Assembly (NCBI GenBank): GCA_019828565.1
Contig: JAHDYR010000053.1
Coordinates: forward strand, 34,114 to 98,113
DNA length: 64,000 nucleotides
Source: Carpediemonas membranifera BICM
Lineage: Eukaryota > Protista > Fornicata
Direction of reading: 5' to 3'
The position numbers were made by a program, and so were the translations under genes. Positions 9,006 through 32,578 of the stretch are shown piece by piece (within the stretch, counting starts at the first letter, position 1; every line of letters starts with the position of its first letter). The notes beneath the pieces were generated by a model. That model saw nothing but the letters and a program-made list of their open reading frames with translations, was not told the DNA's origin and ran no database searches.

Positions 9006-9079
9006 CATACTGTGAAAGTCGGCAGATAATCTACGATTTTTTCTAGATAATCTAGGGCCTAAAAACCCTAGATTATCTA
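9006..9079 (+). repeat. Left TIR of element 1
   Basis: CATACTGTGAAAGTCGG...GATTATCTA; contains three AGATWATCTA quasi-palindromes. Confidence 0.97.
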
Positions 9080-10082
9080 CGGTTGCAAGAAAAAATGAAC
9101 TCGACGATGAGCCGGAGCTGGATCTTCAAAGTGGTATGGTAGTACTTGGCTATACCTAAGCAATACGCATGCGCAGTATCAAACTTTAAATCCTGCTAGA
9201 AAAAAGTAACATAGGGACAAATTGGAATTGAGAGTTGAGACTCAAAAAACGGGCAGGGGGGAGGAAATGGTCCATAGGTACGCCTTATGGGTCGCTTCCT
9301 CCCCTCTGCCCCTTTTTTAATCGCAAAATCGATTTGCCGGATTTGACACACGTTTGATGTGATCAAAATGGATTTGATAGACATGGGTCCAGATCATGCA
9401 GTTGGCCATCCTGAAGCGCTAGGGCGGCCTGCAGACCGCAGCAATGCCTCTGCTGAATGCCCTTCATGCCTGACGGACAGGACGCGCGTTGACTATAAAG
9501 GACTGCATGTTTCGGCATCAGAAGAAGGTGTGGAATACAACGGAGTCATCGCCGAACCGCTCCGACCAAGTCGGTTATTAGGACATCGCGTTCAGACGCC
9601 CTCTGCAATTACCAAGTCAATAGATGGGAGTCGACCTGATCAGCACGTCATTTGGGGCCTCAGGTGACCCTATAGCTGAGTTTGGCTGGGCGCTGCTGCG
9701 GCCATGGGCCGCTAGTGCCCTTACTGGCTCGTTTCTCCTCGTATAGCGGCCGTAGAGGTCTGATCTGAGCCTCGTTATAATAGTCTGCCCGAGTAGAGTC
9801 CAGCCATACCATAAATGTCCCCCAATCTCCCCCTCCCGGTCGCTCATACCTCCAAAATGGCCTATATTCCCTGTAGGGAGATTAATAAGGGCGGATTTCC
9901 CATAAGTCGTGGCATAGAGGGAAGAGACTTTGTACACAGCCTCCAGATCGTGGGTTCAATTTTCACCGGGAGCAATATGCTCTTTTTGGCAGACAACGCC
10001 GCTCCGAGCTCTATCGCGCCCAGCGGTGCCTGCAGCGGCCAGAACAGAGCTAGAATTCGGGTGATTTTTAATCTCGATCGAA

Positions 10083-10745
10083 ATGCTGCTGAAGCACGCT
10101 CTAGAGGGACTGAAGCGCTCTACGAAGGAGCAATACAAGCAGACATATCAAAAACTGTGCGTTTACCTTGAGTGCGACGATGAGGATGCTGATGTTGTTA
10201 TTATCACAGAGATCCGACAAAATAGTGACGTATTCGAACAGTTTCTGGACTCTCTGTCCTTCTGTTGCCGTTTTGGACGGTACAAGTCCATCTCGATGCC
10301 TCAACAGGCTCTCGTTCGCCTTCTTCGCACTGCTGGTGCCGAAACCGACCTAATTTGCAGGATAAGGACTCACACGCTTCCGGCACGCCAGGTGCTGACT
10401 GAGGAAGAGTACGACAAGCTCACGGGTGCTCTGAAGTACGACATTGCCGAGTCCCACCGTCAGCTCGCCCTAGTCGTTGCTCTCTGCCGGCTGGGATCGT
10501 ATGTCGCAGACCTACGTGACTTAGACCTACCCGCGCTACAGGAGTTGATGCAAGAGGCTGCCGTGGATCACCCTGCCTTTGAGACCCTTATCTGGATGTC
10601 CAAGGACCTTGATTCGCTCTGGGGTAGTCCCCCCATGACAGTCAGGCACGCGAACCGTATCCTGCACGAAGCGGGGATGCAGAGTCTGAAAAGACCCATC
10701 TCCCTGTCCGATCTGGATACCCCTGACGACAGATGGAATGACTGA
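10083..10745 (+). CDS. Degenerate tyrosine-recombinase-like protein (220 aa)
   Basis: STKEQY..Y (core-binding-like), VLTEEEYDKL, LALVVALCRLGSYVADLRDL and ILHEAG..PISLSDL mimic YR boxes. Catalytic R, HxxR and Y are not evident. Confidence 0.45.
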   Translation: MLLKHALEGLKRSTKEQYKQTYQKLCVYLECDDEDADVVIITEIRQNSDVFEQFLDSLSFCCRFGRYKSISMPQQALVRLLRTAGAETDLICRIRTHTLPARQVLTEEEYDKLTGALKYDIAESHRQLALVVALCRLGSYVADLRDLDLPALQELMQEAAVDHPAFETLIWMSKDLDSLWGSPPMTVRHANRILHEAGMQSLKRPISLSDLDTPDDRWND

Positions 10746-10777
10746 AGCTGTAAACATATCCATTGACTCTGAATCTT

Positions 10778-11707
10778 TTATTTCTCCATCTGCGAGTTAA
10801 GCCAGGCCACTGCCTTTCCCGTCAAATATACCTTACGTGTGTCGTGCGCCTTCTTTGTTGCTCTTGCGGCTGAAGCATCAACAGTGGCCTGCTTCAACAA
10901 ATCTCGGCAGCTAGACTTCGGCGTCTTGGTGCCACGTCGCGTGCAGGCCCACTCTCTATCGTCCACGGACTCACCACACACAACGCATGACCCTGCGAAT
11001 ACGGTCGGTGGCTTCTCCTTCAGCTTCTGTCGAAGCAGATCGCACATCGCGGTCTTGACGACGCGTCGAGATAATTCATCCGTGCGCAGGGTACTAACAG
11101 GCTCAACCAAGAGCTCTGTCTGAGTAGACGCCTCCTCTAGGTCTCGCACAGTCTGAGTCTCTGCATGCTCACCCTGTGGCGAAAACTGCTGGCATTTTCC
11201 CACCATCCTCGGCTTATCAGGATCAGGACCCAGCGCAGTCATGTAAACAGGTACCTCAACCCGCTTCTCGACTATCTTGACAGGCTGGGAGCCCCTGCGG
11301 GAAGGGGCTTGCGGGTGAACTCGCGTCCTGGTCGGCCCCCCGTTCGCCTCGTTGTGCAGAGCCTCCATGAAGGCATTGAAGCCGTCATCACGGCCCACCT
11401 TCTGCGTCACAAACGACATGACGCATGTGACCGACATCTCAAAGGATGCAAAATCGGCAGCACTGGAAACATCGCGATTGTGGCAGATTGAGTTTCGAGC
11501 TGCCAACAGCTCGCGTATATGTCTCTTATCAGCGTGGTGAAGATCAGGAACACGATGTAGGATCGCTTGCAAAAGCATAGCCGGATCCATCTCGCCACCG
11601 TCACCACGGTACCTCGCGATGTACTCCTGCAGCTTCGGAATCATCCTCAGTAGCGCTTCAAACATCATGCTGGCGTATCCTGCTGAATCCTTCGCCCCAG
11701 AGCTCAT
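10778..11707 (-). CDS. Swt1-like HEPN protein with C-terminal Cys4 zinc finger (309 aa)
   Basis: RxxxxH motif in RELLAARNSICHN; CVVCG..WAC..CR; homologous to 55782-56795. Confidence 0.65.
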   Translation of the reverse strand: MSSGAKDSAGYASMMFEALLRMIPKLQEYIARYRGDGGEMDPAMLLQAILHRVPDLHHADKRHIRELLAARNSICHNRDVSSAADFASFEMSVTCVMSFVTQKVGRDDGFNAFMEALHNEANGGPTRTRVHPQAPSRRGSQPVKIVEKRVEVPVYMTALGPDPDKPRMVGKCQQFSPQGEHAETQTVRDLEEASTQTELLVEPVSTLRTDELSRRVVKTAMCDLLRQKLKEKPPTVFAGSCVVCGESVDDREWACTRRGTKTPKSSCRDLLKQATVDASAARATKKAHDTRKVYLTGKAVAWLNSQMEK

Positions 11708-11967
11708 ATCGGTTTCTTCAGAACGAAATTCTAAAGAAATGTTCGGTGGTAAGTGAGATCACTGCGCGTCTAGAGACAGCAGAAACGTAACCTACAGCCC
11801 ATATTGATGTGGGCTGGGCGTTGCTTCAACTGATAAATGCCACATTTCTCTGTTTACATGGTAAGGTAACACGTGAGTGCTTTGTACTGGCATACTTAAA
11901 GGCAAGGTAAGGTTGGCGGACGTAGTATCACCCGTGGCGCTTGACTATCACTCAATCAGACAGATAT

Positions 11968-12623
11968 TTATTTCTTCGTGGATACCTTGTCGAAGAACTG
12001 CAATGCCAAGGTCAACTTGCCTTCCTTCGTCATCTCTTTGTCGGTCAGCAGTGTCTCGAAGTCAGCGACAACGAGAGGCCGGCAAGCAAAGGGGTCAGCC
12101 CAATAGTCATCTTCGTAGGCGACCGAGAGGAACTCAAACGGACGAATGTCAACGCTTGCTTCATATACAATGACAGGCAAGACTGCATCCTCCACACAAA
12201 CATGGCACAGAAGAGCACTGACATTGTGGTACTAAATAATTGGGGGAGAGGCATGTTACAAACAGCAGAGTTGTCGTTCACCGTGTGGACTCCAAGCTTG
12301 CCCATCAGTGAAGACGCATCCATAGCGAACTTCGTCGTGCCAACGCGAGTGCAGTACGTGGGGTCATCCGGCTGGAAGTCGATCAGTCGGCCGCAGTACA
12401 GGCCGATGATGCTCTTCGCAGGGATTTCGGCACGAGACGCGATGCCCTTGCCAGCGGTGCCTCCATATAGCGTGCGCTGATCAGTCATGTACAGCTGTAC
12501 GCTCTTGGAGACACCGTTGGCCGCTATCGTGATGTCCCGGTCCAGGAACGAGCTACCCTCCTGCTTCCAGTCAATATCCTTCAAGTCTGCCGGTATTTTT
12601 GTCAAACAGCAGCTCATAGTCAT
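11968..12623 (-). CDS. SET-domain protein with one 32-nt intron (12232-12263)
   Basis: GKGIASRAEIPAKSIIGLYCG, MDA, VNDN and EFLSVAY. Removing GTTTGT..TTTAG fuses two ORFs in frame. Confidence 0.8.
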
Positions 12624-12967
12624 GACGAGACATGCTAGAACCCTCCGAGGGGATTACGATCGTTTCTTCCGACATCGTTCTCAGAATTCGACCCGTTTAT
12701 AAATCAATAATAAGCAAGCTAAGCTGCAGCTCAGGCACCCTCCATGCGCTCGTTCCCTGGCATCTTGGCCCGCGGCCTCTTCAGCGGCGTTTCGGCCCCT
12801 CTCGTAAATCGAGAGGTCTTCTTGATGTTGTTACTGTCTCTGTGCTCCCATTGCTTGCCAGTCTCATTGTAGTGTTAAGTTAGTGCCAAATGGTCTTTAT
12901 TGCTGTTCGCTCGCATTAATACGGAAGAGAAAGAATGATGATGTTGATTAGCTTGCGGGGAAAGGCA

Positions 12968-14280
12968 TTACCGGACATTTGACGCGCACAACCTGCTTAA
13001 TACTGCATAAAAGCATCGCTGATCGCTTTCTCTTCTGTTCTTCAACGCCCAAGGAGCGGCTTCCAGGTCGGCAACGGTTGCCGACCTGGACCCGTGCAGT
13101 TTATGCTTTTTCGGCCAACCGACGAAGTCAAGCTTGGCCAAGACACATACTGTGTACACGGACCCTGGCAGGCTAGTTACGCCGCTCAGCCTCTGCATCC
13201 AGTTGATAATCACTCGCCATTTACTTCTGGTGCTTTTCCTGCTCTCTCTTCTCCATCACGTCGTCATACTCGGCCCTCGTCAGCCTCACAGTTGTCATCC
13301 CGGCATCACGGATGTGCTCAAAGGCCTCAACGGGCAGCTTCGGCATCCCGTCCTCGCTGTCGCTGCTGCTGCCCAAGTCTGACTCGCTCTCGTGATAGCG
13401 GCGAAGGCGAATGCGTCTGCTGGGCTCCCTGGTCTTCATAGCGTCATAGAGCGGAGCGAGCCCACTTCCATTGGCCCCGCTACGGACACCCTCATCGGTA
13501 TCTCTCTCAGACATATCACACTCAACCTGTTGTGACTGAACAAATGACAGGTTGTCGACGAGGCTATCCTCGGCATCGCTGTCTGAACTCTCCTCATCCT
13601 CCCACTCTCCTTCCAGCATCTCCAACCCGGCCTCATCGTCAAACTCGCCCTCCACTGCGGTCTCCGGCATCTCTGCCTCGCCAGCTGTCTCGTCAAACAG
13701 CGCCTCATCGTCAGACTCACCCTCCCCCGTGTCGACCCCCATCGGGATTACGCTGGTCGTGGAGCTGGACCATCCTCATCCTGAGCTTTTTGTAAAGCCA
13801 CCAGGTCGGCAGAGCTTAAGGTAATCCTGGCGCCCTCATCCTGGCGCCTCATCCCTGGCGCCGTCATCCCTGGCGTCCTCTCCCTCATAAATCTGAATCA
13901 TCTTCTTGTCTTGCTCCCGATGTTGTCATTGCTGTTTTCGTGTCCACAAGCATTCCAGTCTCATTATAATGTTTATTCAGTACCAAATCATCCTTTAGTG
14001 ACGGGCATTCTCATCTGCATTGCCGAGAAAAAGAGTTGATGTTGATTAGATGGTGACGAATGCATTACCGGACATTTGACGCGCACAACCTGCTTAATAC
14101 TGCATAAAAGCATCGCTGATCGCTTTCTCTTCTGTTCTTCAACGCCCAAGGAGCGGCTTCCAGGTCGGCAACGGTTGCCGACCTGGACCCGTGCAGTTTA
14201 TGCTTTTTCGGCCAACCGACGAAGTCAAGCTTGGCCAAGACACATACTGTGTACACGGACCCTGGCAGGCTAGTTACGCT
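12968..14280. repeat. Internal repeat module: hairpin segment, acidic 3' gene fragment (13221-13742), ATCCTGGCGCC minisatellite (about 13823-13880), hairpin segment
   Basis: Direct copy at 19566-20802; inverted copies within 25150-27156. Confidence 0.9.
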
Positions 14281-14289
14281 GCTCAGACT

Positions 14290-15202
14290 ATGTCTAGAGA
14301 CGTTCGGCTGGGCTCTGCACGGATGGAAATGAACACTATCACGTCAAGCACCCAACAGCAAGAGACAACGGCTTTTAAGGAAGCTTTTGAGCTCTTTATG
14401 GACAAGTACTCGCTATTCACAATCAGTAGGCTTTAACGAGGGCGAGAATAACGGTAACACAGCCAAAATCAGGGCCGATGTCCGCAGCTCGTTCTTTTCC
14501 GCTTGGCTATGCACTCAGTGTGGCAGTAAGTGGATGATGGAGAGAACGAACAGCCTTCTTGTGTCGTTCTCGGGCTCTGTGGCAGTCGACATTCAGACGA
14601 CAGTCTTCGCAGGTTTCGGTGCTGGTGATCCGTCGTCAATGTCGATCGACACCACCCTCGCACTGCTCAAAGACGTGCAGGACTTGGTTGTTTGGTGTGA
14701 CATTGCTGCTAAGGTGAGGCGCATGAGACTACCGAGCGACAAGGTCAGGAAGGCGTGCATTACCATCGCACCGACGAGTGTGGCCAAGAGGGCTTACGCA
14801 ATCGTCAGCCATCCTACTGCTTTCACGGTCTGGTGGGAGCACTATGCCCTTCGCAAGATTTCTCCTGAAGTCTTCAAGGACTTTATTGACTGGGCCAACT
14901 TTACGAGCACAGCCGATCTCGTCACTGGAGAGGTGACTGCTGTTCAGCTCACTGACACTGTGATGCACTATGCCATAGACTCTATCTCCAAGTTTGAGTC
15001 CGGCTATCACCTCACCAAGTGGGAGGAGCCGTGGGTGACCAGAACTTGGCAGAAACCGTGCGAGGCGACTGCAGACGCCAAACAAAACAATCTGGTCGAA
15101 AACAAAACTACTCGCAGCTGGTATTGTCCGCAGCCTTCGCCTCAGGCTCGAAAGCTGTTGGAGCAGTTTACCCGTAGCTCCTTTACTCGGTTTGGTAAGT
15201 AA
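14290..15202 (+). CDS. Orphan cargo protein P, copy 1 (one extra A near 14435)
   Basis: Duplicate of 17041-17952. Confidence 0.6.
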
Positions 15203-15226
15203 CACTGATAAATCAATGGATATAGT

Positions 15227-16507
15227 TTACTCGTCAGGCTCTTCGACCTGAGGAACTGCCCCAGTTGAGACAACTTCCTCATCAGCTGTTCCAATCGCCT
15301 TATAAATGACAACTCTTCTGTCATCGCCCTCAAACTTCTTCTGGATGAGCGTGGTGAGGGACGAGTCATCCTCGGCAGGGGTGTCAAGCAAAAGATTCTT
15401 CAGACCAACATCCATGACAACGTTGGTGTAAGCGATGGTGTCAGGCAGACAGTGGCTCGAGAGCAGGTCCCAGAAGAGATTGGGGAAGAGAATCATGTAT
15501 CTCACCACGAGAATATAGTGTCGCGTGACGGTCCCAGGGTCGATGAACAACATCGTTGCCATGGAGTCACAAATCGACTTGACCATGCCGGCGTACGTCG
15601 CCCTGTAATTCCACACCTTCCGAGTTCCATCGATAAGTTCTCTGGTGGGTCGCATCAAGGCCTCGCTAACCCTAGCCTGCAGTACCTCCAGCTGCTCGGT
15701 CGGGACGATGCAGTCGTCGATGGCCACACCGTCATTCTCCAGCTCATTGTAGAGCTCCATCTGATATGCCACCCATGCGATGTTGCAGATGCGCTCGACA
15801 CTCTGGACCCTCTCATTCCGAATGACCGACTTCAGGTCCGACTTGGATATAAACTTCAGCTCCCTGGCGCCGGCTGCCTCAAGCTTGGTGGAACTAGCCC
15901 ACGAGCTTAGGAACTGCTCCACATCAATCTCACTGGTAAGGAAAGGAAGCTTGCGCTTCGGCGCCTTGGCGCGGGCAGTGGGAGTTATGGCGGATGCGGA
16001 TGCACCAGTGTCGGCGATGGCCACAGACGAGCTACCAACAGAGCCAGAAGAAGCTGCCTCGGCGAGGGACATGGAAGGGACAGCCGAGCGGGTGCCAGAG
16101 CACGGTTCATCGGCTGAAAGCTGTCTGGCAGCAGAACCGGTGGGAGATGGGCCGGCGAGGGATATAGCGGCGTCGCCAGCTGCGCGCCTGGCTGCGCGCA
16201 GGGCTCGGTCTGAAGGCTTGGCAGGAGAACTAGAATCGACTTGCTCTGCGCAATCGGCGGAGCGAAAGCGCTTTTCAGCAGGTTGCGGAGCTGCCTTGCG
16301 CACAATGGGCTCATCGCGTTCCTCTAACACGTTAGAATCTGGAACAAGCTCAAGAGCGGCGCGAAAGAGCTCCTCGGCACGTCCACGGGCGGAATCGTTG
16401 AAACGGTTGACAACGAGGACCGATTTCTCAGATAACTTGTCCCGTCGCATACGATAGGACGTACCAGTGAGGCAGTGAAGCTCCTGAAGCATGTAATTGC
16501 TTTCCAT
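15227..16507 (-). CDS. Orphan cargo protein Q, copy 1 (426 aa)
   Basis: Long ORF; IAWVAYQMELYNEL matches RAWIAYQLCLYDCL in 59114-60460. Confidence 0.75.
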   Translation of the reverse strand: MESNYMLQELHCLTGTSYRMRRDKLSEKSVLVVNRFNDSARGRAEELFRAALELVPDSNVLEERDEPIVRKAAPQPAEKRFRSADCAEQVDSSSPAKPSDRALRAARRAAGDAAISLAGPSPTGSAARQLSADEPCSGTRSAVPSMSLAEAASSGSVGSSSVAIADTGASASAITPTARAKAPKRKLPFLTSEIDVEQFLSSWASSTKLEAAGARELKFISKSDLKSVIRNERVQSVERICNIAWVAYQMELYNELENDGVAIDDCIVPTEQLEVLQARVSEALMRPTRELIDGTRKVWNYRATYAGMVKSICDSMATMLFIDPGTVTRHYILVVRYMILFPNLFWDLLSSHCLPDTIAYTNVVMDVGLKNLLLDTPAEDDSSLTTLIQKKFEGDDRRVVIYKAIGTADEEVVSTGAVPQVEEPDE

Positions 16508-17040
16508 GTCGATTCCAGCAATGCGCGAAGAACAAGAACCTTGGGAACAACCATGGGAGCACCAGACGTACTGTTTACGAAGGAAGATGGTAGGCCAGGG
16601 TCCCCGGTCGATTCACCATGGCCTCTTCAGCGTCCTCATAAATCTGAATCATCTTCTTGTCTTGCTCCCGATGTTGTCATTGCTGTTTTCGTGTCCACAA
16701 GCATTCCAGTCTCATTATAATGTTTATTCAGTACCAAATCATCCTTTAGTGACGGGCATTCTCATCTGCATTGCCGAGAAAAAGAGTTGATGTTGATTAG
16801 ATGGTGACGAATGCATTACCGGACATTTGACGCGCACAACCTGCTTAATACTGCATAAAAGCATCGCTGATCGCTTTCTCTTCTGTTCTTCAACGCCCAA
16901 GGAGCGGCTTCCAGGTCGGCAACGGTTGCCGACCTGGACCCGTGCAGTTTATGCTTTTTCGGCCAACCGACGAAGTCAAGCTTGGCCAAGACACATACTG
17001 TGTACACGGACCCTGGCAGGCTAGTTACGCTGCTCAGACT

Positions 17041-17952
17041 ATGTCTAGAGACGTTCGGCTGGGCTCTGCACGGATGGAAATGAACACTATCACGTCAAGC
17101 ACCCAACAGCAAGAGACAACGGCTTTTAAGGAAGCTTTTGAGCTCTTTATGGACAAGTACTCGCTATTCACAATCAGTAGGCTTTACGAGGGCGAGAATA
17201 ACGGTAACACAGCCAAAATCAGGGCCGATGTCCGCAGCTCGTTCTTTTCCGCTTGGCTATGCACTCAGTGTGGCAGTAAGTGGATGATGGAGAGAACGAA
17301 CAGCCTTCTTGTGTCGTTCTCGGGCTCTGTGGCAGTCGACATTCAGACGACAGTCTTCGCAGGTTTCGGTGCTGGTGATCCGTCGTCAATGTCGATCGAC
17401 ACCACCCTCGCACTGCTCAAAGACGTGCAGGACTTGGTTGTTTGGTGTGACATTGCTGCTAAGGTGAGGCGCATGAGACTACCGAGCGACAAGGTCAGGA
17501 AGGCGTGCATTACCATCGCACCGACGAGTGTGGCCAAGAGGGCTTACGCAATCGTCAGCCATCCTACTGCTTTCACGGTCTGGTGGGAGCACTATGCCCT
17601 TCGCAAGATTTCTCCTGAAGTCTTCAAGGACTTTATTGACTGGGCCAACTTTACGAGCACAGCCGATCTCGTCACTGGAGAGGTGACTGCTGTTCAGCTC
17701 ACTGACACTGTGATGCACTATGCCATAGACTCTATCTCCAAGTTTGAGTCCGGCTATCACCTCACCAAGTGGGAGGAGCCGTGGGTGACCAGAACTTGGC
17801 AGAAACCGTGCGAGGCGACTGCAGACGCCAAACAAAACAATCTGGTCGAAAACAAAACTACTCGCAGCTGGTATTGTCCGCAGCCTTCGCCTCAGGCTCG
17901 AAAGCTGTTGGAGCAGTTTACCCGTAGCTCCTTTACTCGGTTTGGTAAGTAA
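17041..17952 (+). CDS. Orphan cargo protein P, copy 2 (about 303 aa)
   Basis: Open frame; AFTVWWEH..KISPEVFKDFI resembles EFMVWYKA..KIDEEEFTYYI in 58017-58619. Confidence 0.7.
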   Translation: MSRDVRLGSARMEMNTITSSTQQQETTAFKEAFELFMDKYSLFTISRLYEGENNGNTAKIRADVRSSFFSAWLCTQCGSKWMMERTNSLLVSFSGSVAVDIQTTVFAGFGAGDPSSMSIDTTLALLKDVQDLVVWCDIAAKVRRMRLPSDKVRKACITIAPTSVAKRAYAIVSHPTAFTVWWEHYALRKISPEVFKDFIDWANFTSTADLVTGEVTAVQLTDTVMHYAIDSISKFESGYHLTKWEEPWVTRTWQKPCEATADAKQNNLVENKTTRSWYCPQPSPQARKLLEQFTRSSFTRFGK

Positions 17953-17976
17953 CACTGATAAATCAATGGATATAGT

Positions 17977-19257: not shown

Positions 19258-19565
19258 GTCGATTCCAGCAATGCGCGAAGAACAAGAACCTTGGGAACAA
19301 CCATGGGAGCACCAGACGTACTGTTTACGAAGGCAGATGGTAGGCCAGGGTCCCCGGTCGATTCACCATGGCCTCTTCAGCGTCCTCATAAATCTGAATC
19401 ATCTTCTTGTCTTGCTCCCGATGTTGTCATTGCTGTTTTCGTGTCCACAAGCATTCCAGTCTCATTATAATGTTTATTCAGTACCAAATCATCCTTTAGT
19501 GACGGGCATTCTCATCTGCATTGCCGAGAAAAAGAGTTGATGTTGATTAGATGGTGACGAATGCA

Positions 19566-23519: not shown

Positions 23520-23878
23520 GCCCCATTCAGGATGCTCCCCCTAAATGTTCCGTTGCAAGCGTCTGACGGGCGTTCTCTGGATACCGACCAAGATGGAGGT
23601 CACGTGGATGAACGGACGATAATTACGGTATTCTGGCCATGCCTGGTACTCTCAAATCATCTGTACTGCTCTATGCTCCATTTATAGTTCATATCGTTTC
23701 GTCCTGATGGACTTTTGGTACTTGATGTTGTTTAGAGATAATTGTTGCTTTAATGATGCTCTGCGCCCGCATACTGATGTTTCTTAGTGATATGTGCATG
23801 CCTGTATCGTTAAAGCCGCCAGTATTCTTCCTATTCTTCAGTTCGTCATTTCGGTCTCGTTGCGAGCATAAAGTGCGC
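23520..23878. other. Conserved, probably non-coding block shared with element 2 (about 50455-50812)
   Basis: Core 23573-23638 matches 50510-50575 with 2 mismatches; further colinear motifs follow. Confidence 0.8.
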
Positions 23879-24002
23879 GAATGCGCGGGTCAGTTCACCC
23901 GTTTTCAGCGAAGCTGATGCGACAACACAGAGGCAAGCGAATCCTTTCACCTCAGGCGTTGCCAAGAGGCCGTTGTCTGCCAGGATCTATAAGCAGTGAT
24001 GA

Positions 24003-24332: not shown

Positions 24333-24333
24333 G

Positions 24334-25721
24334 ATGGAAGGAAGCCCGCAGGAGATGGAAACAAGCATTCAAGACGTGAAGAATGCTTGGTTGTGCACCA
24401 TCAGCAAGAAATCTTCCCGGAAAGCGGCCGCAAACAACCTTTCGCGGTTCGTTCAATTCGTACAACGTGAGCGAGGGAGTACCGAGGACGAAGCGCTCTC
24501 CGTGATCCGATCCGAGGAGGTTAGATCGCTTGTGCCCGGTTTTGCTGCATCATTGAACAAGGCAACCGCTGCTGTCACTCTCAGTGCCGTCAACTCATTC
24601 CGAAACTCCGGCAGAGACAATGTCAAGCCGCTTGGGCAGTTTGAGCCTGTCGCATCGGAAGCTATTGTCCGACTAGTCTTCCCCTACAATGCGCTGGCTC
24701 TTATCATCAGCCACACGGGCATGACTGCCACATCAGCCCGCGATATTGATGTGAGCGAGCTCCAGATTCCCCCGGAACTCTCTGACTGGTTGCTATTCAC
24801 CGGGGCACCATCTGCGATGTCCGCTGTGATGCCTAGCACCTTCTCGCAGGCTCTCAAGTCGGTCGGGCTGAGTGTTAACCAGCTTCGCTATGCGCCCACT
24901 GTGCATGTCGATCTCAATCAGCTCAAGAAGCGGGTGATTGAGACACAAAGACGGACTGGCAGGCCCAGGGATCCGATCAAGGTTCGTAAGGTCATTAAGG
25001 ACAAGCGCATCAGCCTGACCGATGAGCAGTTCAGGCATCAGTTGGCGTCCAGTCACTTAACGACCACGCGGCGCCCAACGATCCTCGATCTCAACCCGGA
25101 GATCCGAAGCTCTGCTGACCTGGTGCCGCCGACGCTCGATGACTGGCTTTACAACAAGCTCAGGATTAGGATGGTCCAGCTCCACGACCAGCGTAAGCCC
25201 GAGGGGGTCGACACGGGGAGGGTGAGTCTGACGATGAGGCGCTGTTTGACGAGACAGCTGGCGAGGCAGAGATGCCGGAGACCGCAGTGGAGGGCGAGTT
25301 TGACGATGAGGCCGGGTTGGAGATGCTGGAAGGAGAGTGGGAGGATGAGGAGAGTTCAGACAGCGATGCCGAGGATAGCCTCGTCGACAACCTGTCATTT
25401 CTTCAGTCACAACAGGTTGAGTGTGATATGTCTGAGAGAGATACCGATGAGGGTGTCCGTAGCGGGGCCAATGGAAGTGGGCTCGCTCCGCTCTATGACG
25501 CTATGAAGACCAGGGAGCCCAGCAGACGCATTCGCCTTCGCCGCTATCACGAGAGCGAGTCAGACTTGGGCAGCAGCAGCGACAGCGAGGACGGGATGCC
25601 GAAGCTGCCCGTTGAGGCCTTTGAGCACATCCGTGATGCCGGGATGACAACTGTGAGGCTGACGAGGGCCGAGTATGACGACGTGATGGAGAAGAGAGAG
25701 CAGGAAAAGCACCAGAAGTAA
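24334..25721 (+). CDS. Degenerate tyrosine-recombinase-like protein with acidic tail (frameshift in the G run near 25215)
   Basis: NLSRFVQF, TLSAVNSF, LALIISHTGMT and GLSVNQLRY; homologous to 62639-63667. Confidence 0.55.
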
Positions 25722-27156
25722 ATGGCGAGTGATTATCAACTGGATGCAGAGGCTGAGCGGCGTAACTAGCCTGCCAGGGTCCGTGTACACAGTATGTGTC
25801 TTGGCCAAGCTTGACTTCGTCGGTTGGCCGAAAAAGCATAAACTGCACGGGTCCAGGTCGGCAACCGTTGCCGACCTGGAAGCCGCTCCTTGGGCGTTGA
25901 AGAACAGAAGAGAAAGCGATCAGCGATGCTTTTATGCAGTATTAAGCAGGTTGTGCGCGTCAAATGTCCGGTAATGCATTCGTCACCATCTAATCAACAT
26001 CAACTCTTTTTCTCGGCAATGCAGATGAGAATGCCCGTCACTAAAGGATGATTTGGTACTGAATAAACATTATAATGAGACTGGAATGCTTGTGGACACG
26101 AAAACAGCAATGACAACATCGGGAGCAAGACAAGAAGATGATTCAGATTTATGAGGGAGAGGACGCCAGGGATGACGGCGCCAGGGATGAGGCGCCAGGA
26201 TGAGGGCGCCAGGATTACCTTAAGCTCTGCCGACCTGGTGGCTTTACAAAAAGCTCAGGATGAGGATGGTCCAGCTCCACGACCAGCGTAATCCCGATGG
26301 GGTCGACACAGGGGAGGGTGAGTCTGACGATGAGGCGCTGTTTGACGAGACAGCTGGCGAGGCAGAGATGCCGGAGACCGCAGTGGAGGGCGAGTTTGAC
26401 GATGAGGCCGGGTTGGAGATGCTGGAAGGAGAGTGGGAGGATGAGGAGAGTTCAGACAGCGATGCCGAGGATAGCCTCGTCGACAACCTGTCATTTGTTC
26501 AGTCACAACAGGTTGAGTGTGATATGTCTGAGAGAGATACCGATGAGGGTGTCCGTAGCGGGGCCAATGGAAGTGGGCTCGCTCCGCTCTATGACGCTAT
26601 GAAGACCAGGGAGCCCAGCAGACGCATTCGCCTTCGCCGCTATCACGAGAGCGAGTCAGACTTGGGCAGCAGCAGCGACAGCGAGGACGGGATGCCGAAG
26701 CTGCCCGTTGAGGCCTTTGAGCACATCCGTGATGCCGGGATGACAACTGTGAGGCTGACGAGGGCCGAGTATGACGACGTGATGGAGAAGAGAGAGCAGG
26801 AAAAGCACCAGAAGTAAATGGCGAGTGATTATCAACTGGATGCAGAGGCTGAGCGGCGTAACTAGCCTGCCAGGGTCCGTGTACACAGTATGTGTCTTGG
26901 CTAAGCTTGACTTCGTCGGTTGGCCGAAAAAGCATAAACTGCACGGGTCCAGGTCGGCAACCGTTGCCGACCTGGAAGCCGCTCCTTGGGCGTTGAAGAA
27001 CAGAAGAGAAAGCGATCAGCGATGCTTTTATGCAGTATTAAGCAGGTTGTGCGCGTCAAATGTCCGGTAATGCATTCGTCACCATCTAATCAACATCAAC
27101 TCTTTTTCTCGGCAATGCAGAGGAGAATGCCCGTCACTAAAGGATGATTTGGTACT
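25150..27156. repeat. Two tandem units of about 1096 bp, inverted relative to 12968-14280 and 19480-20802
   Basis: ORF offset 25729 to 26825 is 1096; mirror ORFs are visible in the track. Confidence 0.9.
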
Positions 27157-27441
27157 AACAGGCTTTAATAAGCATGTCAAGCCTGTGATCACGATAACAG
27201 CCTTCAATAACTACATCAAGGCAATACATCAAGAAGATTGTTTAAAGAGACGGCGGGGAGCAAGATGCAGGGAGAGCGGCAGGGAAACGAAGGCATGGGG
27301 ACAGGAGCCCGAGAAGAGCGCCTGGAGAACGGTGAGGAAGAACGGCGGGGAAGAGCAGCCGGGCGCATGGTACACACATCTGTCATCATGTGGCATCAAC
27401 ATTGCCACAGTGGTCAACTCAATAACAAGCAATGTCTTCAT

Positions 27442-28725: not shown

Positions 28726-28822
28726 TCCAGAGTAGATTTTCTACTAAAAATTGGCATTGTTACAACCAATCATTAACATTAATAGAGAAGGAGAATAAAG
28801 ACTCACCAGCCCGCGGCCAATC

Positions 28823-31432
28823 GTGACTCAGGTTCGCATCAGACGTCGACAGAGACGAGTTAAACATGAGGCTGGGCAATTGTCTTCTGAGCTAATCCTT
28901 AACCTTTCAAAGAGGATGCTAATACCGAAGTGGACGCTATTACACGGCACTATTTATGCTCCTCAAGAGGATACTGGCATCAACACCATTCTATGCAGCG
29001 TGTACCTTTCCATTGACTCAGATAACGTCAGCACACATCGGTTTCGTGTTTCCAAAGCTCCCCAACGCCGTGAGTTCGTCCAGGTTGTTCAAGAGTTGCT
29101 CAGTGCAGGATATATATGTCGCCAGGATGTTTCAAAGCAGCTGTACCCCTCTCCGACTGCCACATCTATCGCTGCGGAGAAGAGGAATCACACGACTTAC
29201 CCAAGAGCCTACGTGAAGCATACATCCGCAGTTGACACTCTCGCAGCCGAGAATGAGTGTCTACGGAAGCGTCTGGCCGACACGGAGCGCCTGATTCAAC
29301 TAACGAACCAGCTCAAGTCCATCACAAACGGATACAATGCCGTTAACGACGAGATCCGCATAATGAACTCTCTTGCAGGTAGGCTTAACCTTGATATTGT
29401 GCGGATATCTCCTGTTACCTCGAAGATCAAGTCTCTCGCGTGTAATATCCAGAATATGGAGGAGATAGAATCACTTCTCCAATCTGACACCGCTTGGAGG
29501 AGATTTATCCGCAGTCACGTTCCCGCCAACATTCAGCACAGGGTAACGGCGAGAAGGTCTGATCAGGCCAATCAGGAATATGAGCTCGACCTCATCACCC
29601 ATGTCGAAGCTCCTCTTGATGTTGTACGATCATCTATTCAGGGCGACTCGGCCCATGCAGAGCACGTTGCAGGAAAAATCGTCGTCTTCTATGACTCAGA
29701 GCAGGACCGTGAGACTCACTATAGCATCATGAAAGAGCAAGGCCTCACCCCTCGGATGCAGACGAGTACAAGATATACCCATGTATATCATGCATCATTT
29801 GATATCATGGAGTATTATCGCCAAGCGGTTGCATTCCCCGTATCGCTGGAGACGTCACGATCCGGGCGCAAGAGTGCAGCTCGGACATTAAGACGACAGA
29901 GTCATTCCGCTGAGACGGGGACGATCCCACTCGTGTTAGAGGTGTGGGTCGATGCGTGGAGAGGTCTGACAACCGCTGTTAAGATTCGTTTCCTCGACGA
30001 CTCCCACAAAGTCTTTCCGTCTGGTGCGACTCCTCCTTTCCGGATTCTTGAATACAACGGCCCAGAAAGTCTCATCACTGAGCACTTTGCCTTCATTGAA
30101 CAATCCATCGAGAGCACACACCGCGAGGTGCTGGAAGTCAGGAACACGGGTCTCCTCTGCCGAGTAACGCGTGTCTTTATTATCGCAGACCATCCAGCCA
30201 TGTCCAAGGTTTGCGGGGCACTCATTGGAGGCCCCTCGCCATTCAGTTCCGTTCATTCGAAGAACAAGGGCTGGAGTCCCTTTGGTCGCACCCCGCGCTG
30301 CTCCTTGGCAGATATCCTGCTGGCGAAGCATAAGTCACAGTTCGACACTGTTATGGACAGAGAGGCCAAATGGGGATCCTTCTATAACCATCAGAAGAAG
30401 TGCATCGCTCCCACTTTGTTTGAGACGTCGACTGCATCGCTGCCCAGAGACTGCGTCTTCTTATTCCCTCCGATCATGCATGTCAGTCATGACTTTGTGT
30501 CGTTGATTCATGCCATGTGCCGCATGTTCAAGCCAGAGCCAATTGACCCAGACAGCGACCCTCGTCAAATTAAGGAGGTGAAGGCAAGGAACGCGATGCT
30601 AGCGAATCTGGCGTCGTTTGAGCCACCCAGCCGTACGACGGGCTGCAACGAGCAAGTCAAGGGGAGAAAGATGATAGCATCGATTGGACTTAAGCTGCAT
30701 CGTGCGTTCCCGCCACCCGTGCAGTCATTATTCATACTCGCTGCATACCTCCAGGAGCACTACTATTCCCACGAGGATGTAACTGAGAACATGGTCGTGT
30801 GGCATCGCTTGACAGCACTTCTCGTGCACCTCTTCTCTGTGACCATGTGTCTTAGCACATCTAACACGGTTGCCCCAGACATTCCGATCCGTCAACCATC
30901 TGCGACTCCCGATACGGCGCCGTGTGTTGATACACTTCACGGATTGGCGCGTATTGCCGCGCTGCCGGAGATACAAGCGAAGACTCGGGCCTCCTTTGGT
31001 CGAGTCATCGAAGAGTGCTTTGAACGTGATTTCATTGGGAATCAGGAGAGTCGAGTGCGATTGCGTCAGAACCAGACGGTTCTTGAGAGCACTATTCTGA
31101 AGGAGCAGGTTGAGTTGCTGTTCAGATGCCTTCGTGGAGTGATTTCCTACGGAAGACGCGAAACAGATGTCCCACCCCAGTCACCCCTGAAACTTATGCG
31201 CATTCATAAGTGTTGTAAGGATGCCAATTGGTGGCTTCGTATCCGGAGTGTGCATTCTAAGACGCTGACAGCGACTGAGTGCCAAAAGCTGCACATGGTG
31301 TTTACGAAGGAAGTCAACGGCCTATGGCGCACTGTCTTGTCGAAAGCAGACTGTAGCTTTGACTCAGACTGGCTGGATGTTCCCATTCACGAGCAGGGAC
31401 ACACTCTTGATGTTTGCATATGCAAGAGATAG
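28823..31432 (+). CDS. DDE transposase, EnSpm/CMC-like (ORF 869 aa, start uncertain)
   Basis: VWVDAW (D1), IIADHPA (D2, DxPA), PPIMH and EECFER (E). It is the longest ORF in the TIR element, and the motifs are conserved in element 2. Confidence 0.75.
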   Translation: MTQVRIRRRQRRVKHEAGQLSSELILNLSKRMLIPKWTLLHGTIYAPQEDTGINTILCSVYLSIDSDNVSTHRFRVSKAPQRREFVQVVQELLSAGYICRQDVSKQLYPSPTATSIAAEKRNHTTYPRAYVKHTSAVDTLAAENECLRKRLADTERLIQLTNQLKSITNGYNAVNDEIRIMNSLAGRLNLDIVRISPVTSKIKSLACNIQNMEEIESLLQSDTAWRRFIRSHVPANIQHRVTARRSDQANQEYELDLITHVEAPLDVVRSSIQGDSAHAEHVAGKIVVFYDSEQDRETHYSIMKEQGLTPRMQTSTRYTHVYHASFDIMEYYRQAVAFPVSLETSRSGRKSAARTLRRQSHSAETGTIPLVLEVWVDAWRGLTTAVKIRFLDDSHKVFPSGATPPFRILEYNGPESLITEHFAFIEQSIESTHREVLEVRNTGLLCRVTRVFIIADHPAMSKVCGALIGGPSPFSSVHSKNKGWSPFGRTPRCSLADILLAKHKSQFDTVMDREAKWGSFYNHQKKCIAPTLFETSTASLPRDCVFLFPPIMHVSHDFVSLIHAMCRMFKPEPIDPDSDPRQIKEVKARNAMLANLASFEPPSRTTGCNEQVKGRKMIASIGLKLHRAFPPPVQSLFILAAYLQEHYYSHEDVTENMVVWHRLTALLVHLFSVTMCLSTSNTVAPDIPIRQPSATPDTAPCVDTLHGLARIAALPEIQAKTRASFGRVIEECFERDFIGNQESRVRLRQNQTVLESTILKEQVELLFRCLRGVISYGRRETDVPPQSPLKLMRIHKCCKDANWWLRIRSVHSKTLTATECQKLHMVFTKEVNGLWRTVLSKADCSFDSDWLDVPIHEQGHTLDVCICKR

Positions 31433-32504
31433 TAAAGATCGGATTTAGTCTCGCGGTCAATCTCACGTGGCCCAGAGCAGCGTGCTCCTGGAATCAACAG
31501 GGCATAAAACACCCTGCGTATTCCGGTAGCACACCGTTCTGACTCACGTCCGTCTCTGGTTGTCGTACAGGTCTATTTACGTGTTTGGCGATGGCGCTCC
31601 TGACATAAGCTTAATGGCGTGTCGTGGCTGTCAGTATGCTGCAAATGTCGCAGCGAGAAAGGAGTCACCAATCGCGTTCAGCTTACTTGTTTCTCGCCTG
31701 ATACTGCTCGTAATATCGTTCAAGCGTGAATCTATGAAGTAATGGGACTGAATGGCCTCTATTGCGTCAATTTCCTGCGTAATCGTTGTTGAATGGTCTA
31801 GAATAGATGTTGCAGCTACTTCCAGCTCATGTTGCATGCTAAATGCTGTGTTTTGGACAATTGGTCGTGTTCAGGCAGAATTTTTTCGTGCAAAGTGCAG
31901 GCTAATACCCGTCCTTAAACTGTGGGATCAGCCGCTGGGTAAATATACTGAGAAAAAACCATATAGCTGAGTTCACTGTCTTGTGCTGAATACGGTGGCG
32001 CCATTTATTTCTCTGAATCGTCAAGTTTTGTCAGCGTTGACCGCGCAAGACCGGTCGTCCTTACGCGATGTCACCAACACCATCATATTCTTCCCCCTGA
32101 CATTCTACGTGTCCCCCAGTCTGGATTCGTGGTCTGCAATATTCACAGAGATATTCGCCTTCTCTTTCGCGAATTTGACTCTGATCAAGTCGAAAAACGA
32201 AAAAACGACCATATCTCGAAATCTACACGTTGGAATCGGTACCAGAGTGATTTTGCGCATATGTACATCCCGTCAGCAGTCTGCAAAATCACTCTCGTAC
32301 CGATTCCAACGTGTCAATTTTGAGATATTGCTCGTTTCATCCTTTTGCCTTAACCTGCGTCGCAAAGAAGTCGAAATCAGTGGTTAGACCGCACTGGACC
32401 TCTTGCAGGCTCTCTGCATACGCGCTTTAGTATGCAATGAAGGTATTCATTTTCCCGTAAATTGTTTAAATTCAATGAATACTTCATTTTCGGTCCGGAA
32501 GAAA

Positions 32505-32578
32505 TAGATAATCTAGGGTTTTTAGGCCCTAGATTATCTAGAAAAAATCGTAGATTATCTGCCGACTTTCACAGTATG
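32505..32578 (-). repeat. Right TIR of element 1
   Basis: Exact reverse complement of 9006-9079. Confidence 0.97.

Follow-up and report, generated by a model that had tools for sequence, protein, structure and literature searches.

A giant TIR transposon of 23.6 kb occupies positions 9006-32578 of the stretch of Carpediemonas membranifera DNA analysed here, which is 64,000 nucleotides in length and is referred to below as the window. In our view it is probably a DNA transposon of the cut-and-paste type, autonomous and recently active, that carries a cargo of accessory genes and represents a lineage outside the libraries and literature searched, placed in or beside the CMCT clade. A preliminary description of the window had proposed that the TIR transposon is complete, carries cargo, has been active recently, has CATACTG ends, which are atypical, and is flanked by a target-site duplication (TSD) of 2 bp, and the analysis supports this description. 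The positions of the features are given in Table 1.

Table 1. Features of the transposon and its insertion site (positions in the window)
Feature	Position	Strand	Remarks
Left TSD copy (CA)	9004-9005		Single CA in empty paralogous sites
Left TIR, 74 bp	9006-9079	+	Starts CATACTGTG; 100% complementary to right TIR
Left subterminal hairpin	9245-9318		Palindrome; sub-threshold miRNA-like matches only
220-aa ORF	10083-10745	+	No family match
HEPN-like protein, 309 aa	10778-11707	-	C-terminal CxxC...C...C; weak HEPN Pfam matches
SET-like gene	11968-12623	-	Exon 1 12264-12623; exon 2 11968-12231
R repeat array, left, 1097-bp unit	12927-14292	+	Further copies 16634-17043, 19384-20802
Tandem duplication, 2750-bp unit	13883-19787		Holds 426-aa ORF twice
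426-aa ORF, two tandem copies	15227-16507 and 17977-19257	-	In duplicated 2750-bp unit
271- or 336-aa ORF	Within 2750-bp unit	Opposite to 426-aa ORF	
683-aa protein	20986-23037	-	Acidic or coiled N-terminal part; predicted OTU domain aa 490-683 (20989-21570)
152-bp non-coding block	23541-23692		Between divergent OTU and 390-aa genes
390-aa ORF	24334-25506	+	Very large family; first 289 aa conserved
R repeat array, right, ~1.85 units	25144-27156	-	Inverted relative to left arrays
Zinc-finger protein, 260 aa	27442-28224	-	Cysteine-rich, PHD/FYVE-like; divergent from transposase gene
Transposase ORF	28823-31432	+	869 aa open; 838 aa from first ATG at 28916
Right subterminal hairpin	32194-32337		46-nt arms
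Right TIR, 74 bp	32505-32578	-	100% complementary to left TIR
Right TSD copy (CA)	32579-32580		Compared with empty paralogous sites

Insertion site, repeats and genomic copies

The transposon is inserted in a retroelement, the interrupted copy of which holds an RVT_1 reverse-transcriptase ORF at 6344-8923. Two paralogous copies of this retroelement within the window carry the empty site GGGGGAAACCAACCGCC at 4950-4966 and 42102-42118, with a single CA at 4958-4959 and 42110-42111, respectively. At the filled site, the letters read ...AAACCA, then CATACTG...CAGTATG, then CAACCGCC. Since both empty paralogues read GGGGGAAACCAACCGCC uninterrupted, just two bases besides the element have been gained at the filled site, a duplication of CA; a 4-bp duplication of AACC was ruled out, because the filled site is only two bases longer than both empty sites. 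An intact paralogue of the retroelement contains a 1151-aa ORF (2298-5753, minus strand) that crosses the empty site, and over the 300 nt that adjoin the insert on its right, all three retroelement copies have 100% identity. The earlier claims that a retrotransposon ORF is split by the insert, and that perfect 74-bp TIRs, a CA duplication and the empty allele in paralogues of the window are present, were thus all borne out, the last of them by two empty sites.

Each TIR contains the 10-mer AGATAATCTA three times, and in the left TIR two of the copies are direct (9024-9033 and 9045-9054) and one is inverted (9069-9078). All 6 occurrences of the 10-mer in the window, where 0.01 would be expected, fall within the two TIRs. 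Inside the element, internal repeat makes up about 7 kb. Every R unit holds an internal CATACTGTG, and the octamer CATACTGT is found in the R repeats as well as at the termini. The internal CATACTGTG sites were considered as the ends of a nested foreign family, which was rejected because the 60 nt upstream are kept in 40 of the 40 scored genomic matches, inside copies of the family.

Rfam and tRNA scans of the element gave sub-threshold hairpins only, and the left subterminal hairpin was rejected as a known RNA, its miRNA-like matches being below threshold. The 152-bp non-coding block is 85% identical to its counterpart in a sister element that begins at position 44789 of the window, whereas the proteins there are only 25-43% identical. 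At least 40 scored copies of this block (129 candidates) with 96-100% identity are present in the genome, and an RNA-folding signal is absent on both of its strands.

In the C. membranifera genome (24 Mb), there are 36 matches to the TIR of the element and 8 full-length copies of the transposase with 99-100% identity, besides truncated ones. A search of the genome for paired TIRs with different 2-bp TSDs, which had been suggested in the preliminary description, detected end pairs with their own duplications of TC (contig C67, 693227/715887) and AA (C67, 130642/153306), and a third duplication, GC, flanking a 753-bp derivative on C56. Two apparently paired large copies, C68 100289/130718 and C6 178016/198429, have unequal flanking dinucleotides. 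The interpretation of two 'MITE-like' elements of about 750 bp as left-plus-right deletion derivatives was rejected, since each of them consists of two inverted right ends. In the assembly of another organism (GCA_002919055.1), the L065 element is 11.6 kb in length and has CATACTGC ends, 74-bp TIRs and a GC duplication, and removal of this duplication restores the reading frame of a gypsy RNase H. A 2-bp TSD was therefore observed in five independent cases, namely this element, the three further pairs and the L065 element.

The transposase and its fold

The AlphaFold model of the transposase (pLDDT 85, pTM 0.75), a prediction that had been suggested earlier for this ORF, gave a RAG1/Transib-like fold with a DDE triad formed by D377, D456 and E734. 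These catalytic candidates are invariant in 18 family sequences with 20-60% identity, and distant relatives from metagenomes keep the triad as well (hhalign probability 98.9% and 97.3%). In the model, strand 366-379 contains D377, strand 444-455 is followed by D456, and helix 731-747 holds E734, and this placement matches that of the acidic triad in DDE/RNase H-fold cut-and-paste transposases (strand 1, after strand 4 and downstream helix, respectively). The DxPA, MH and FER motifs noticed in the preliminary description are present and conserved across the family as D456-H-P-A, M552-H553 and F733-E734-R735. A cluster of the form H795-x-C797 ... C865-x-C867 follows E734 in the C-terminal part.

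The best 46 Foldseek matches of the model in the PDB were all RAG1 or HzTransib, with E values of 1e-7 to RAG1 and 5e-4 to HzTransib. By VIA-align, the Z score was 14.2 over 438 residues with RAG1 (model 153-776 against RAG1 459-1007) and 13.9 over 397 residues with HzTransib, while the best unrelated fold reached 7.6, and the RAG1 and HzTransib matches cover the span from DDBD to CTD. RAG1 Pfam-domain clusters were also the nearest language-model neighbours of the transposase (0.94). A shape search of the ESM Atlas detected a DUF1280 cluster (TM 0.59 over 432 residues) and a Transposase_21 (tnp2) cluster (TM 0.52 over 196 residues).

At the sequence level, the transposase had no match in Pfam, and 0 of the 18 family members matched Transposase_21, RAG1, EnSpm-linked models at E values up to 1, or indeed another Pfam model. 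When the family profile was searched against PDB chains, RAG1 and HzTransib included, no RAG1 or Transib match was obtained. A profile search of 1.84 billion representatives yielded only 32 nameless matches, and Pfam on the weak distant ones was empty. A genome-wide search with PF02992 (Transposase_21) gave no match, yet its controls were equally silent. In the 18-sequence alignment, neither C(2)C nor H(3-4)H is conserved as a zinc motif, and a conserved CxxC was not found; the conserved His and Cys residues are H553 and C608 (18/18 each), H556 and H669 (14/18 each) and H661 (13/18), and between D456 and E734 only H553, with H556 in 14/18, and C608 were scored as conserved.

The preliminary description had considered that these motifs and the short TSD fit the EnSpm/CMC superfamily, and it is conceivable, although unlikely, that the element is a true EnSpm/CACTA (CMC) member with unusual termini and many captured genes. 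EnSpm elements have CACTA/CACTG termini and CMC elements have TSDs of 2-3 bp; the 2-bp TSD of our element falls within this range, but its termini are CATACTG. The D-x-P-A, M-H and F-E-R motifs, which we take to be like those of EnSpm and plant CACTA transposases, are conserved, but not one of the 18 members matches Transposase_21 or an EnSpm-linked Pfam model even at E 1. The Atlas shape matches with Transposase_21 and DUF1280 given above also speak for this reading, the one with Transposase_21 (TM 0.52) being a structural lead and the sole link to that family. As with EnSpm/CACTA elements, for which a large size is possible, there are subterminal repeats and proteins beyond the transposase, but no TnpA homologue or TnpA-like second protein was recognised among the latter. 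The fold matches in the PDB do not discriminate EnSpm/CMC from Transib, because no CMC transposase is among them, and a CMC enzyme might thus match RAG1/Transib first. Our transposase, however, lacks the C(2)C and H(3-4)H motifs that EnSpm, Mirage, Chapaev, Transib and RAG1 are listed as having (Kojima 2025, PMC12730594). Given the missing Transposase_21 match, the absent zinc motifs and the ends, membership of EnSpm/CMC proper was not borne out, and it is safest, in our judgement, to place the element in a lineage of its own, either within the broad CMCT clade or next to it. The idea that the element is possibly undescribed holds so far, as the lineage is apparently absent from Pfam, the PDB sequences and the literature searched.

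Cargo genes and their recurrence

In Pfam searches, none of the larger ORFs of the element had a match above threshold, and the cargo was characterised by weaker matches, predicted structures and comparison with the sister element. The HEPN-like protein matches three Pfam HEPN families weakly (E 0.013-0.1), as does its homologue in the sister element, and both proteins keep R71-N72-x3-H76-N77 and the C-terminal cysteines. The two exons of the SET-like gene are separated by a 32-nt GT..AG gap (12232-12263), a candidate tiny intron or frameshift. Each exon aligns collinearly (E 3e-4 and 8e-5) with a sister-element protein at 47893-48720 in which Pfam confirmed a SET domain, NDN stands in place of the NHS motif, and no Pfam match was obtained on either exon when they were searched one by one. 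The 260-aa zinc-finger protein has weak FYVE and PHD matches and shares its Cys/His pattern with the sister ORF 45766-46476, in which a Rubicon-homology zinc domain was detected (E 6.5e-4).

The AlphaFold model of the C-terminal domain of the 683-aa protein (pLDDT 84) has OTU deubiquitinases as all of its best 47 Foldseek matches in the PDB, with OTUD3 at the top (E 4e-4), and the family profile searched against the PDB matches viral and bacterial OTUs. The G-x-C, W and H-A of this domain, including G22, C24 and H175 (domain numbering), are invariant in the family. We concluded from the model that the 683-aa protein carries an OTU-fold cysteine protease domain, with predicted activity. For the 390-aa ORF, which is 43% identical to the sister-element ORF 62639-63667, there are more than 113 genome matches, and the near-identical copies are mostly open frames of 470 aa versus 398 aa here; the language-model lead for this ORF, to tyrosine-recombinase N-terminal and integrase clusters, is below the trusted feature count. 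The 426-aa ORF is confined to the family of this element, with 12 genome matches of 97-100% identity.

Four transposase-bearing families, i.e. this element, the sister element and two families designated 39% and 28%, have the terminal CATACTGT in common, and the CATACTG terminus recurs in the L065 element. The sister families of this genome encode homologous transposases at 25-61% identity and share the SET-like, zinc-finger, HEPN-like, OTU and 390-aa genes. The present family is the largest (about 20-30 kb versus about 11-12 kb), and the 426-aa gene and the inverted 1.1-kb repeat arrays belong to it, whereas BLAST did not find in it the GNAT and 334-aa genes that the sister element has. SET-like and zinc-finger homologues are also present in elements of GCA_002919055.1, the L065 element having genes of both types.

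The content of the sibling copies is variable. The cargo might be no functional kit at all, the element being a small core of ends and transposase bloated by nested or recombined sibling pieces and partial gene duplicates. We regard this as improbable, although parts of the element do have such a make-up. The 683-aa ORF is chimeric, with sibling copies resembled by its residues 244-683 (89%) and about 20 other loci by its residues 1-380 (90-95%), but the catalytic-type residues of its OTU domain are conserved, as is the HEPN motif. The R units duplicate, in part, the 3' end of the 390-aa gene and have TIR-like CATACTGTG sites, and the tail of the 390-aa ORF is frameshifted relative to the R-unit copies; long open frames, on the other hand, are kept in most copies. 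Judged from match coordinates, siblings hold 0-2 copies of the 426-aa gene and may have an inverted centre, and composite and nested arrangements of the family occur on C26, but the SET-like, zinc-finger, HEPN-like, OTU and 390-aa types recur together with the transposase in families that are 25-60% identical, and the SET-like and zinc-finger genes do so in another organism. We concluded that the cargo is real but mosaic. The 'own multi-gene cargo' of the preliminary description therefore stands with respect to these five recurring gene types, but it is rearranged between copies; likewise, its 'about nine genes' is roughly right as a count of ORF families, although the 426-aa ORF is duplicated in tandem, the 390-aa ORF has a frameshift in its tail and the SET-like gene is split.

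Proposed transposition, meaning and comparison with known systems

For a cargo-carrying cut-and-paste transposon of this kind, we propose that the transposase would bind the 74-bp TIRs via the three AGATAATCTA 10-mers, cleave at the conserved CATACTG terminus and reinsert the element with a 2-bp stagger, which would account for the duplication of 2 bp. Excision may use hairpins on the flanking DNA, as an analogy with Transib and RAG suggests, and the canonical zinc ligands would have been either lost from the lineage or never present in it. The OTU-fold protease, the SET-like (methyltransferase-like), HEPN-like and multi-zinc-finger proteins, the abundant 390/470-aa protein and family-specific orphans travel with the element. 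These cargo proteins probably target ubiquitin, chromatin or RNA pathways of the host, or the element's own DNA, and might in this way favour its expression and movement. The inverted internal repeat arrays presumably drive changes in copy number and inversion of the central segment, so that the copies differ in length (about 20-30 kb).

We also put forward, more tentatively and with some doubt, that the CATACTG-ended elements with 2-bp TSDs of Carpediemonas and environmental eukaryotes could be a lineage of superfamily rank with a RAG1/Transib fold and no canonical zinc site, which stably co-transmits a toolkit of OTU, SET, GNAT, zinc-finger reader and HEPN proteins, directed at ubiquitin, chromatin and RNA, to manage its own silencing. 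If this is true, the RAG1-type recombinase architecture would extend to deep-branching protists, and a tractable system for transposon-encoded chromatin control would be at hand. RAG1 builds antibody genes and descended from Transib-type transposases, and to our knowledge solved structures of the RAG1/Transib architecture are only from animals and an insect transposon. The element is a young, intact, multi-copy instance of this architecture in a free-living metamonad, and its 2-bp stagger, CAT tip and absent zinc ligands help to tell ancestral features of the RAG1 fold from dispensable ones. The resemblance of the cargo to enzymes acting on ubiquitin, histones and RNA offers a way to test transposon editing of the host silencing machinery, and a transposition assay is feasible, given eight open transposase genes with 99-100% identity and 74-bp ends that are defined.

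The CMCT clade includes EnSpm/CACTA, Mirage, Chapaev, Transib, Plavaka, ESTA as well as Lanisha (Kojima 2025, PMC12730594), with 5'-CA..TG-3' termini and TSDs of 2-5 bp (PMC12730594). Our element resembles this clade in its CA..TG termini (CATACTG...CAGTATG) and in its 2-bp TSD, which lies inside the range. It differs in that no sequence similarity to the named members was detected, in its CATACTG(T) terminus and in a multi-gene cargo set of a different kind; because C(2)C and H(3-4)H are not conserved, its membership of the clade rests on features of the fold, the ends and the TSD.

Along about 400-440 residues (Z about 14), the transposase has the fold and the order of domains of Transib (HzTransib; PDB 6pqx, 6pqn) and of the RAG1 core (PDB 6xnz and 4wwx, among others), with the DDE positions on equivalent secondary-structure elements, and the elements have in common long TIRs with a conserved terminal heptamer-like motif and internal repeats. 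It is longer than they are, by about 150 residues at the N-terminus and about 80 at the C-terminus, and lacks the ZnC2/ZnH2 ligands, and no RAG2-like partner was seen in the element. The defining traits of Transib are a 5-bp TSD and a CAC that makes up positions 1-3 of a CACAATG heptamer (PMC1131882). A divergent Transib-superfamily element, its stagger shifted from 5 bp to 2 bp, would account for the top structural matches being all RAG1 and HzTransib from DDBD to CTD, for the nearest language-model neighbours and for ends made of a heptamer-like terminus followed by repeated 10-mers, but it is very improbable in view of the 2-bp TSD in all five independent cases, the T as third base (CAT versus CAC), the lack of HMMER-level similarity to the RAG1/Transib PDB chains, the missing zinc ligands, and the 23.6 kb and many genes here versus 3-4 kb and one gene.

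Cargo of a chromatin-related kind is also carried by other DNA transposons. Some fungal CMCT members carry TET/JBP chromatin-related cargo (PMC12730594), and these, as well as the HarbingerS and MuDR elements with SET genes of Phytophthora (cited in PMC12730594), are likewise DNA transposons that co-transmit a gene of the histone-methyltransferase-like or another epigenetic type. Unlike them, our element belongs to another transposase lineage and carries OTU, SET-like, HEPN-like and zinc-finger genes together, with GNAT in its relatives.

Insertion site, genomic copies and related elements

The preliminary description had the 23.6-kb element (9006-32578) cleanly splitting a retrotransposon ORF, with perfect 74-bp TIRs, a CA duplication and an empty allele in sibling copies within the window, and this picture proved correct. 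At the left junction GGGGGAAACCA is followed by CATACTGTG, and at the right junction CACAGTATG is followed by CAACCGCC, whereas the empty site GGGGGAAACCAACCGCC is present with no insert in two sibling retroelement units (4950-4966 and 42102-42118). An intact ORF runs across the empty site, and an RVT_1-positive ORF is found in the interrupted copy; in all three retroelement units the 300 nt that follow the insertion on its right are 100% identical. Since, besides the insert, the filled site has exactly two bases more than the empty one, and the TIR boundary is symmetric, we concluded that CA is the target-site duplication (TSD); the two extra bases also rule out a 4-bp AACC duplication. The 10-mer AGATAATCTA occurs three times in each TIR, twice in direct orientation 21 bp apart and once inverted, and these six copies, the only ones in the 64 kb (0.01 expected), are obvious candidates for transposase binding sites.

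The flanks (1-9005 and 32579-44788) consist of two related elements with reverse transcriptases, arrayed in tandem at periods of about 3.4-4.0 kb; a super-unit of about 9.5 kb is repeated (1-300 = 34524-34823 = 44054-44353). Each end of the transposon has a subterminal hairpin about 240-380 bp further in (9245-9318 and 32194-32337, the right one with 46-nt arms); the Rfam matches of these hairpins were miRNA-like and sub-threshold only. ARAGORN called no tRNA in the window.

Protein searches identified the host as Carpediemonas membranifera. In its genome assembly (G000; 24.2 Mb, 69 contigs, the window being C39:34114-98113) the 74-bp TIR has 36 matches, and 33 of the 36 are full-length, with a match of at least 97%. 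Eight copies of the 869-aa ORF are full-length and uninterrupted, with 99-100% identity, and several more are truncated or broken; open frames of about 850 aa also occur in other transposase families, at about 61%, 54%, 39%, 35% and 30% identity. The dinucleotides adjoining 30 TIR ends were read, and they match at four of six end pairs, the window's CA included (chance expectation 1/16). Thus the anticipated pairs of TIRs with different 2-bp duplications exist (TC, AA and GC), but two pairs have non-matching flanks, which we attribute to putative recombination between copies. The insertion sites have no target consensus. One unit of a complex cluster at C26:1032686-1071066 has two right-type ends and two inversely oriented transposase genes; the end of this unit at 1051804 adjoins the truncated 426-aa gene of a further copy, which ends at 1070993, and this suggests self-nesting.

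The terminal octamer CATACTGT is common to the element's family, the sister element starting at 44789, the 39% family (L060) and a 28% family (L063), and is also found inside the element's own internal repeats, R; unlike the octamer, the subterminal sequence is family-specific. A transposase from another organism (P0010, assembly GCA_002919055.1, 24% identity) lies in an element at locus L065 that is flanked by a GC duplication, removal of which restores the gypsy RNase H frame KEAYAILYCMKK. Because the same type of tip and a 2-bp duplication occur there in another assembly, the CATACTG tip and the 2-bp stagger are traits of the lineage and not quirks of the window copy. The host of this insertion (L065 677-2206 and 13748-15128) is the RNase H region of a Ty3/gypsy pol gene, which parallels the element's insertion into a retroelement ORF. 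The left end of the sister element, with CATACTGTAAG, is at 44789, and the window contains no right end to match it; genome-wide, the sister's TIR is matched 40 times, with pairs at 11.3 kb. The transposase homologue of the sister element (52849-54968, minus strand, 25-30% identical) reads as two overlapping ORFs (53283-54968 and 52849-53307) and is therefore probably frameshifted.

Coordinates of the features of the element, its derivatives and relatives (window positions unless a contig, C, or locus, L, is given)
Feature	Position	Strand	Size	Remarks
TIR arms	9006-9079, 32505-32578		74 nt each	100% complementary
CA duplication	9004-9005, 32579-32580			single CA in empty units at 4958-4959 and 42110-42111
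Intact retroelement paralogue ORF	2298-5753	minus	1151 aa	spans empty site
Interrupted retroelement copy ORF	6344-8923			RVT_1-positive
Transposase ORF	28823-31432		869 codons open	first ATG 28916
Unassigned ORF	10083-10745		220 aa	function unassigned
HEPN-like protein	10778-11707	minus	309 aa	weak matches to three HEPN families
SET-like gene	12264-12623 + 11968-12231	minus		parts separated by 32-nt GT..AG gap
426-aa ORF			426 aa	two tandem copies; family-specific
683-aa protein	20986-23037	minus	683 aa	C-terminal 194 residues: OTU-fold cysteine protease domain
390-aa ORF			390 aa	family with >113 genomic matches; acidic tail frameshifted in window copy
Multi-zinc-finger protein			260 aa	divergent from transposase gene
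Tandem duplicate			2750 bp	inside element
R unit			1097 bp	partial copy of 390-aa gene 3' end plus downstream sequence
R copies	12927-14292, 16634-17043, 19384-20802	plus
R copies	25144-27156	minus
CATACTGTG sites in R	13146, 14243, 16994, 19744	plus
CATACTGTG sites in R	25796, 26892	minus
End pair	C67 693227/715887		22.7 kb	duplication TC
End pair	C67 130642/153306		22.7 kb	duplication AA
End pair	C68 100289/130718			flanking dinucleotides non-matching
End pair	C6 178016/198429			flanking dinucleotides non-matching
Derivative L006 (end pair)	C56:71615-72367		753 bp	two inverted right ends; duplication GC
Derivative L023	C13:68039-68781		743 bp	two inverted right ends, inside longer 30-bp-flank palindrome
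Derivative L007	C55:47266-47377		112 bp	two overlapping TIRs
P0010 element	L065 2171-13799		11.6 kb	74-bp TIRs, 93% complementary, start CATACTGC

The transposase

The 869-aa transposase ORF has no Pfam match even at an E value of 10. A search of 1.84 billion representative proteins with a profile of seven Carpediemonas transposase families gave only 32 matches; a Pfam scan of the 10 weakest-scoring gave no family, and among the cluster names for 10 of the 32 the sole informative one was Carpediemonas membranifera, the others having none or 'hypothetical protein'. Profiles of 7 and 18 transposase sequences found no RAG1 or Transib chain among the PDB sequences.

An AlphaFold model was built from the 18-sequence alignment (mean pLDDT 85, pTM 0.75). 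The 46 best Foldseek matches in the PDB were all RAG1 (E about 1e-7, TM by target 0.44-0.52) or HzTransib (E 5e-4). By VIA-align, residues 153-776 of the model lie on RAG1 459-1007 (Z 14.2, 438 residues), a span from the dimerisation/DNA-binding domain through the C-terminal domain; the values were Z 13.9 and 397 of 480 residues for HzTransib, and Z 7.6 for the best unrelated fold, an IS transposase. RAG1 clusters also ranked first (0.94) in an independent protein-language-model search, and an Atlas shape search with the model returned a DUF1280-containing cluster (TM 0.59) and a Transposase_21 cluster (TM 0.52 over 196 residues). The model and its RAG1 and HzTransib matches confirm the RNase H fold with an insertion domain that had been expected.

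The catalytic candidates D377, D456 and E734 are invariant across the 18 sequences, which are only 20-60% identical, and occupy DDE-type positions in the model: D377 on strand 366-379, D456 just past strand 444-455 and E734 in helix 731-747. Two far more distant metagenomic proteins (hhalign probability 98.9% and 97.3%) retain W-x-D, D-H, P-P-x-M-H and E-E-x-F-E. We concluded from this invariance and retention that the three motifs named in the preliminary description (DxPA, MH and FER) are real and conserved. The 18-sequence alignment has no conserved CxxC after D456, and the only conserved Cys or His residues between D456 and E734 are H553 and C608 (each 18/18), H556 (14/18), H661 and H669. 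A cluster, H795-x-C797 ... C865-x-C867, lies past E734, beyond the RAG1-aligned region.

Internal repeats and accessory genes

Internal repeats make up about 7 kb of the element. In each R unit CATACTGTG precedes a TIR-like GGCAG...ACG pattern, and these sites face inward, as true ends do. That they are the ends of a nested foreign element is ruled out, because the upstream 60 nt are always co-duplicated; all matches of a 160-nt probe spanning the internal site are full length and confined to copies of the element's family. In these copies, R is arranged in tandem steps of 1096-1097 bp, plus on the left and minus on the right, and its copy number varies per element, which gives element lengths of about 20 to 30 kb. 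According to match coordinates, the plus strand carries the OTU and 426-aa genes in the copy C67:693227-715960, and their order is the reverse of that in the window copy; both copies have valid 2-bp TSDs. This putative inversion of the central segment fits recombination between the inverted R arrays, which would produce exactly this change of strand and order. In the chimeric 683-aa gene, residues 244-683 match sibling copies at 89% identity, and residues 1-380 match about 20 loci elsewhere, with 581-aa frames, at 90-95%. The window's OTU gene is a recombinant.

In the OTU domain G-x-C, W and H-A are invariant; a search against PDB sequences gave three weak matches, all OTU domains, and the top 47 Foldseek matches of its model (pLDDT 84) were all OTU deubiquitinases. 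The HEPN-like protein has a homologue in the sister element that likewise matches HEPN families weakly, and the two have a common R-N-x3-H-N motif and C-terminal cysteine cluster. Each part of the SET-like gene, searched singly, is collinear with the sister element's Pfam-positive SET protein and the gene has NDN in place of NHS; its 32-nt gap is either a candidate tiny intron or a frameshift. Most near-identical copies of the 390-aa family have 470-aa open frames. For the 390-aa ORF the language model gave a sub-threshold lead to tyrosine-recombinase N-terminal and integrase clusters, with no catalytic residues evident.

Homologues of these genes lie beside other transposases: SET-like, zinc-finger, HEPN-like and 390-aa homologues in the sister element (transposase 25-30% identical), OTU-family and 390-aa-family genes adjoining 61%-family transposases elsewhere in the genome, and, in the other organism, SET-like and zinc-finger homologues at L065 and SET-like genes with a GNAT gene at the further locus L066. 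A recurring accessory gene set thus exists, the role of which we can only infer.

The divergently oriented OTU and 390-aa genes are separated by a non-coding block of 152 bp (23541-23692; sister, 50478-50629), which contains CACGTG and gave no RNA-folding signal. The two elements share 85% identity over this block, against only 25-43% in their proteins. At least 40 scored genome copies (129 candidates) are 96-100% identical, usually 0.5-0.8 kb upstream of OTU-family genes. The block may serve as a common bidirectional promoter, or it may be a hotspot of gene conversion.

Comparison with known transposons

The CMCT clade (EnSpm/CACTA, Mirage, Chapaev, Transib and relatives) is characterised by CA..TG termini, 2-5 bp TSDs and C(2)C plus H(3-4)H motifs (Kojima 2025, PMC12730594); the element's family has the first two traits but not the third, the zinc motifs. 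In our reading the family forms a lineage of its own, in or beside CMCT. The preliminary assignment to EnSpm/CMC is live but unproven. The PDB fold matches included no CMC (EnSpm/Mirage/Chapaev) transposase, so the top rank of RAG1 and Transib cannot separate 'Transib-like' from 'CMC-like'. EnSpm has CACTA or CACTG ends and a Pfam transposase model, neither of which is found in the element's family. The two defining traits of Transib, 5-bp TSDs and an invariant CAC tipping the CACAATG heptamer (PMC1131882), are both contradicted here. In a maximum-likelihood tree from a quick search with a midpoint root, seven of the eight Carpediemonas transposases included form one clade (SH-aLRT 99), outside which are relatives from other sources and one further Carpediemonas protein, P0009.

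Large CACTA elements are known. SET genes are carried by HarbingerS and MuDR transposons in Phytophthora, and TET/JBP genes by several fungal transposon lineages, CMCT members included (PMC12730594). A literature search on Carpediemonas transposons and related terms found no description of the element. What is new is a transposase family of RAG1/Transib fold that is invisible to Pfam and has no canonical zinc ligands, the combination of a CATACTG tip with a 2-bp stagger, and a multi-gene accessory set, all occurring as young, intact copies in a metamonad.
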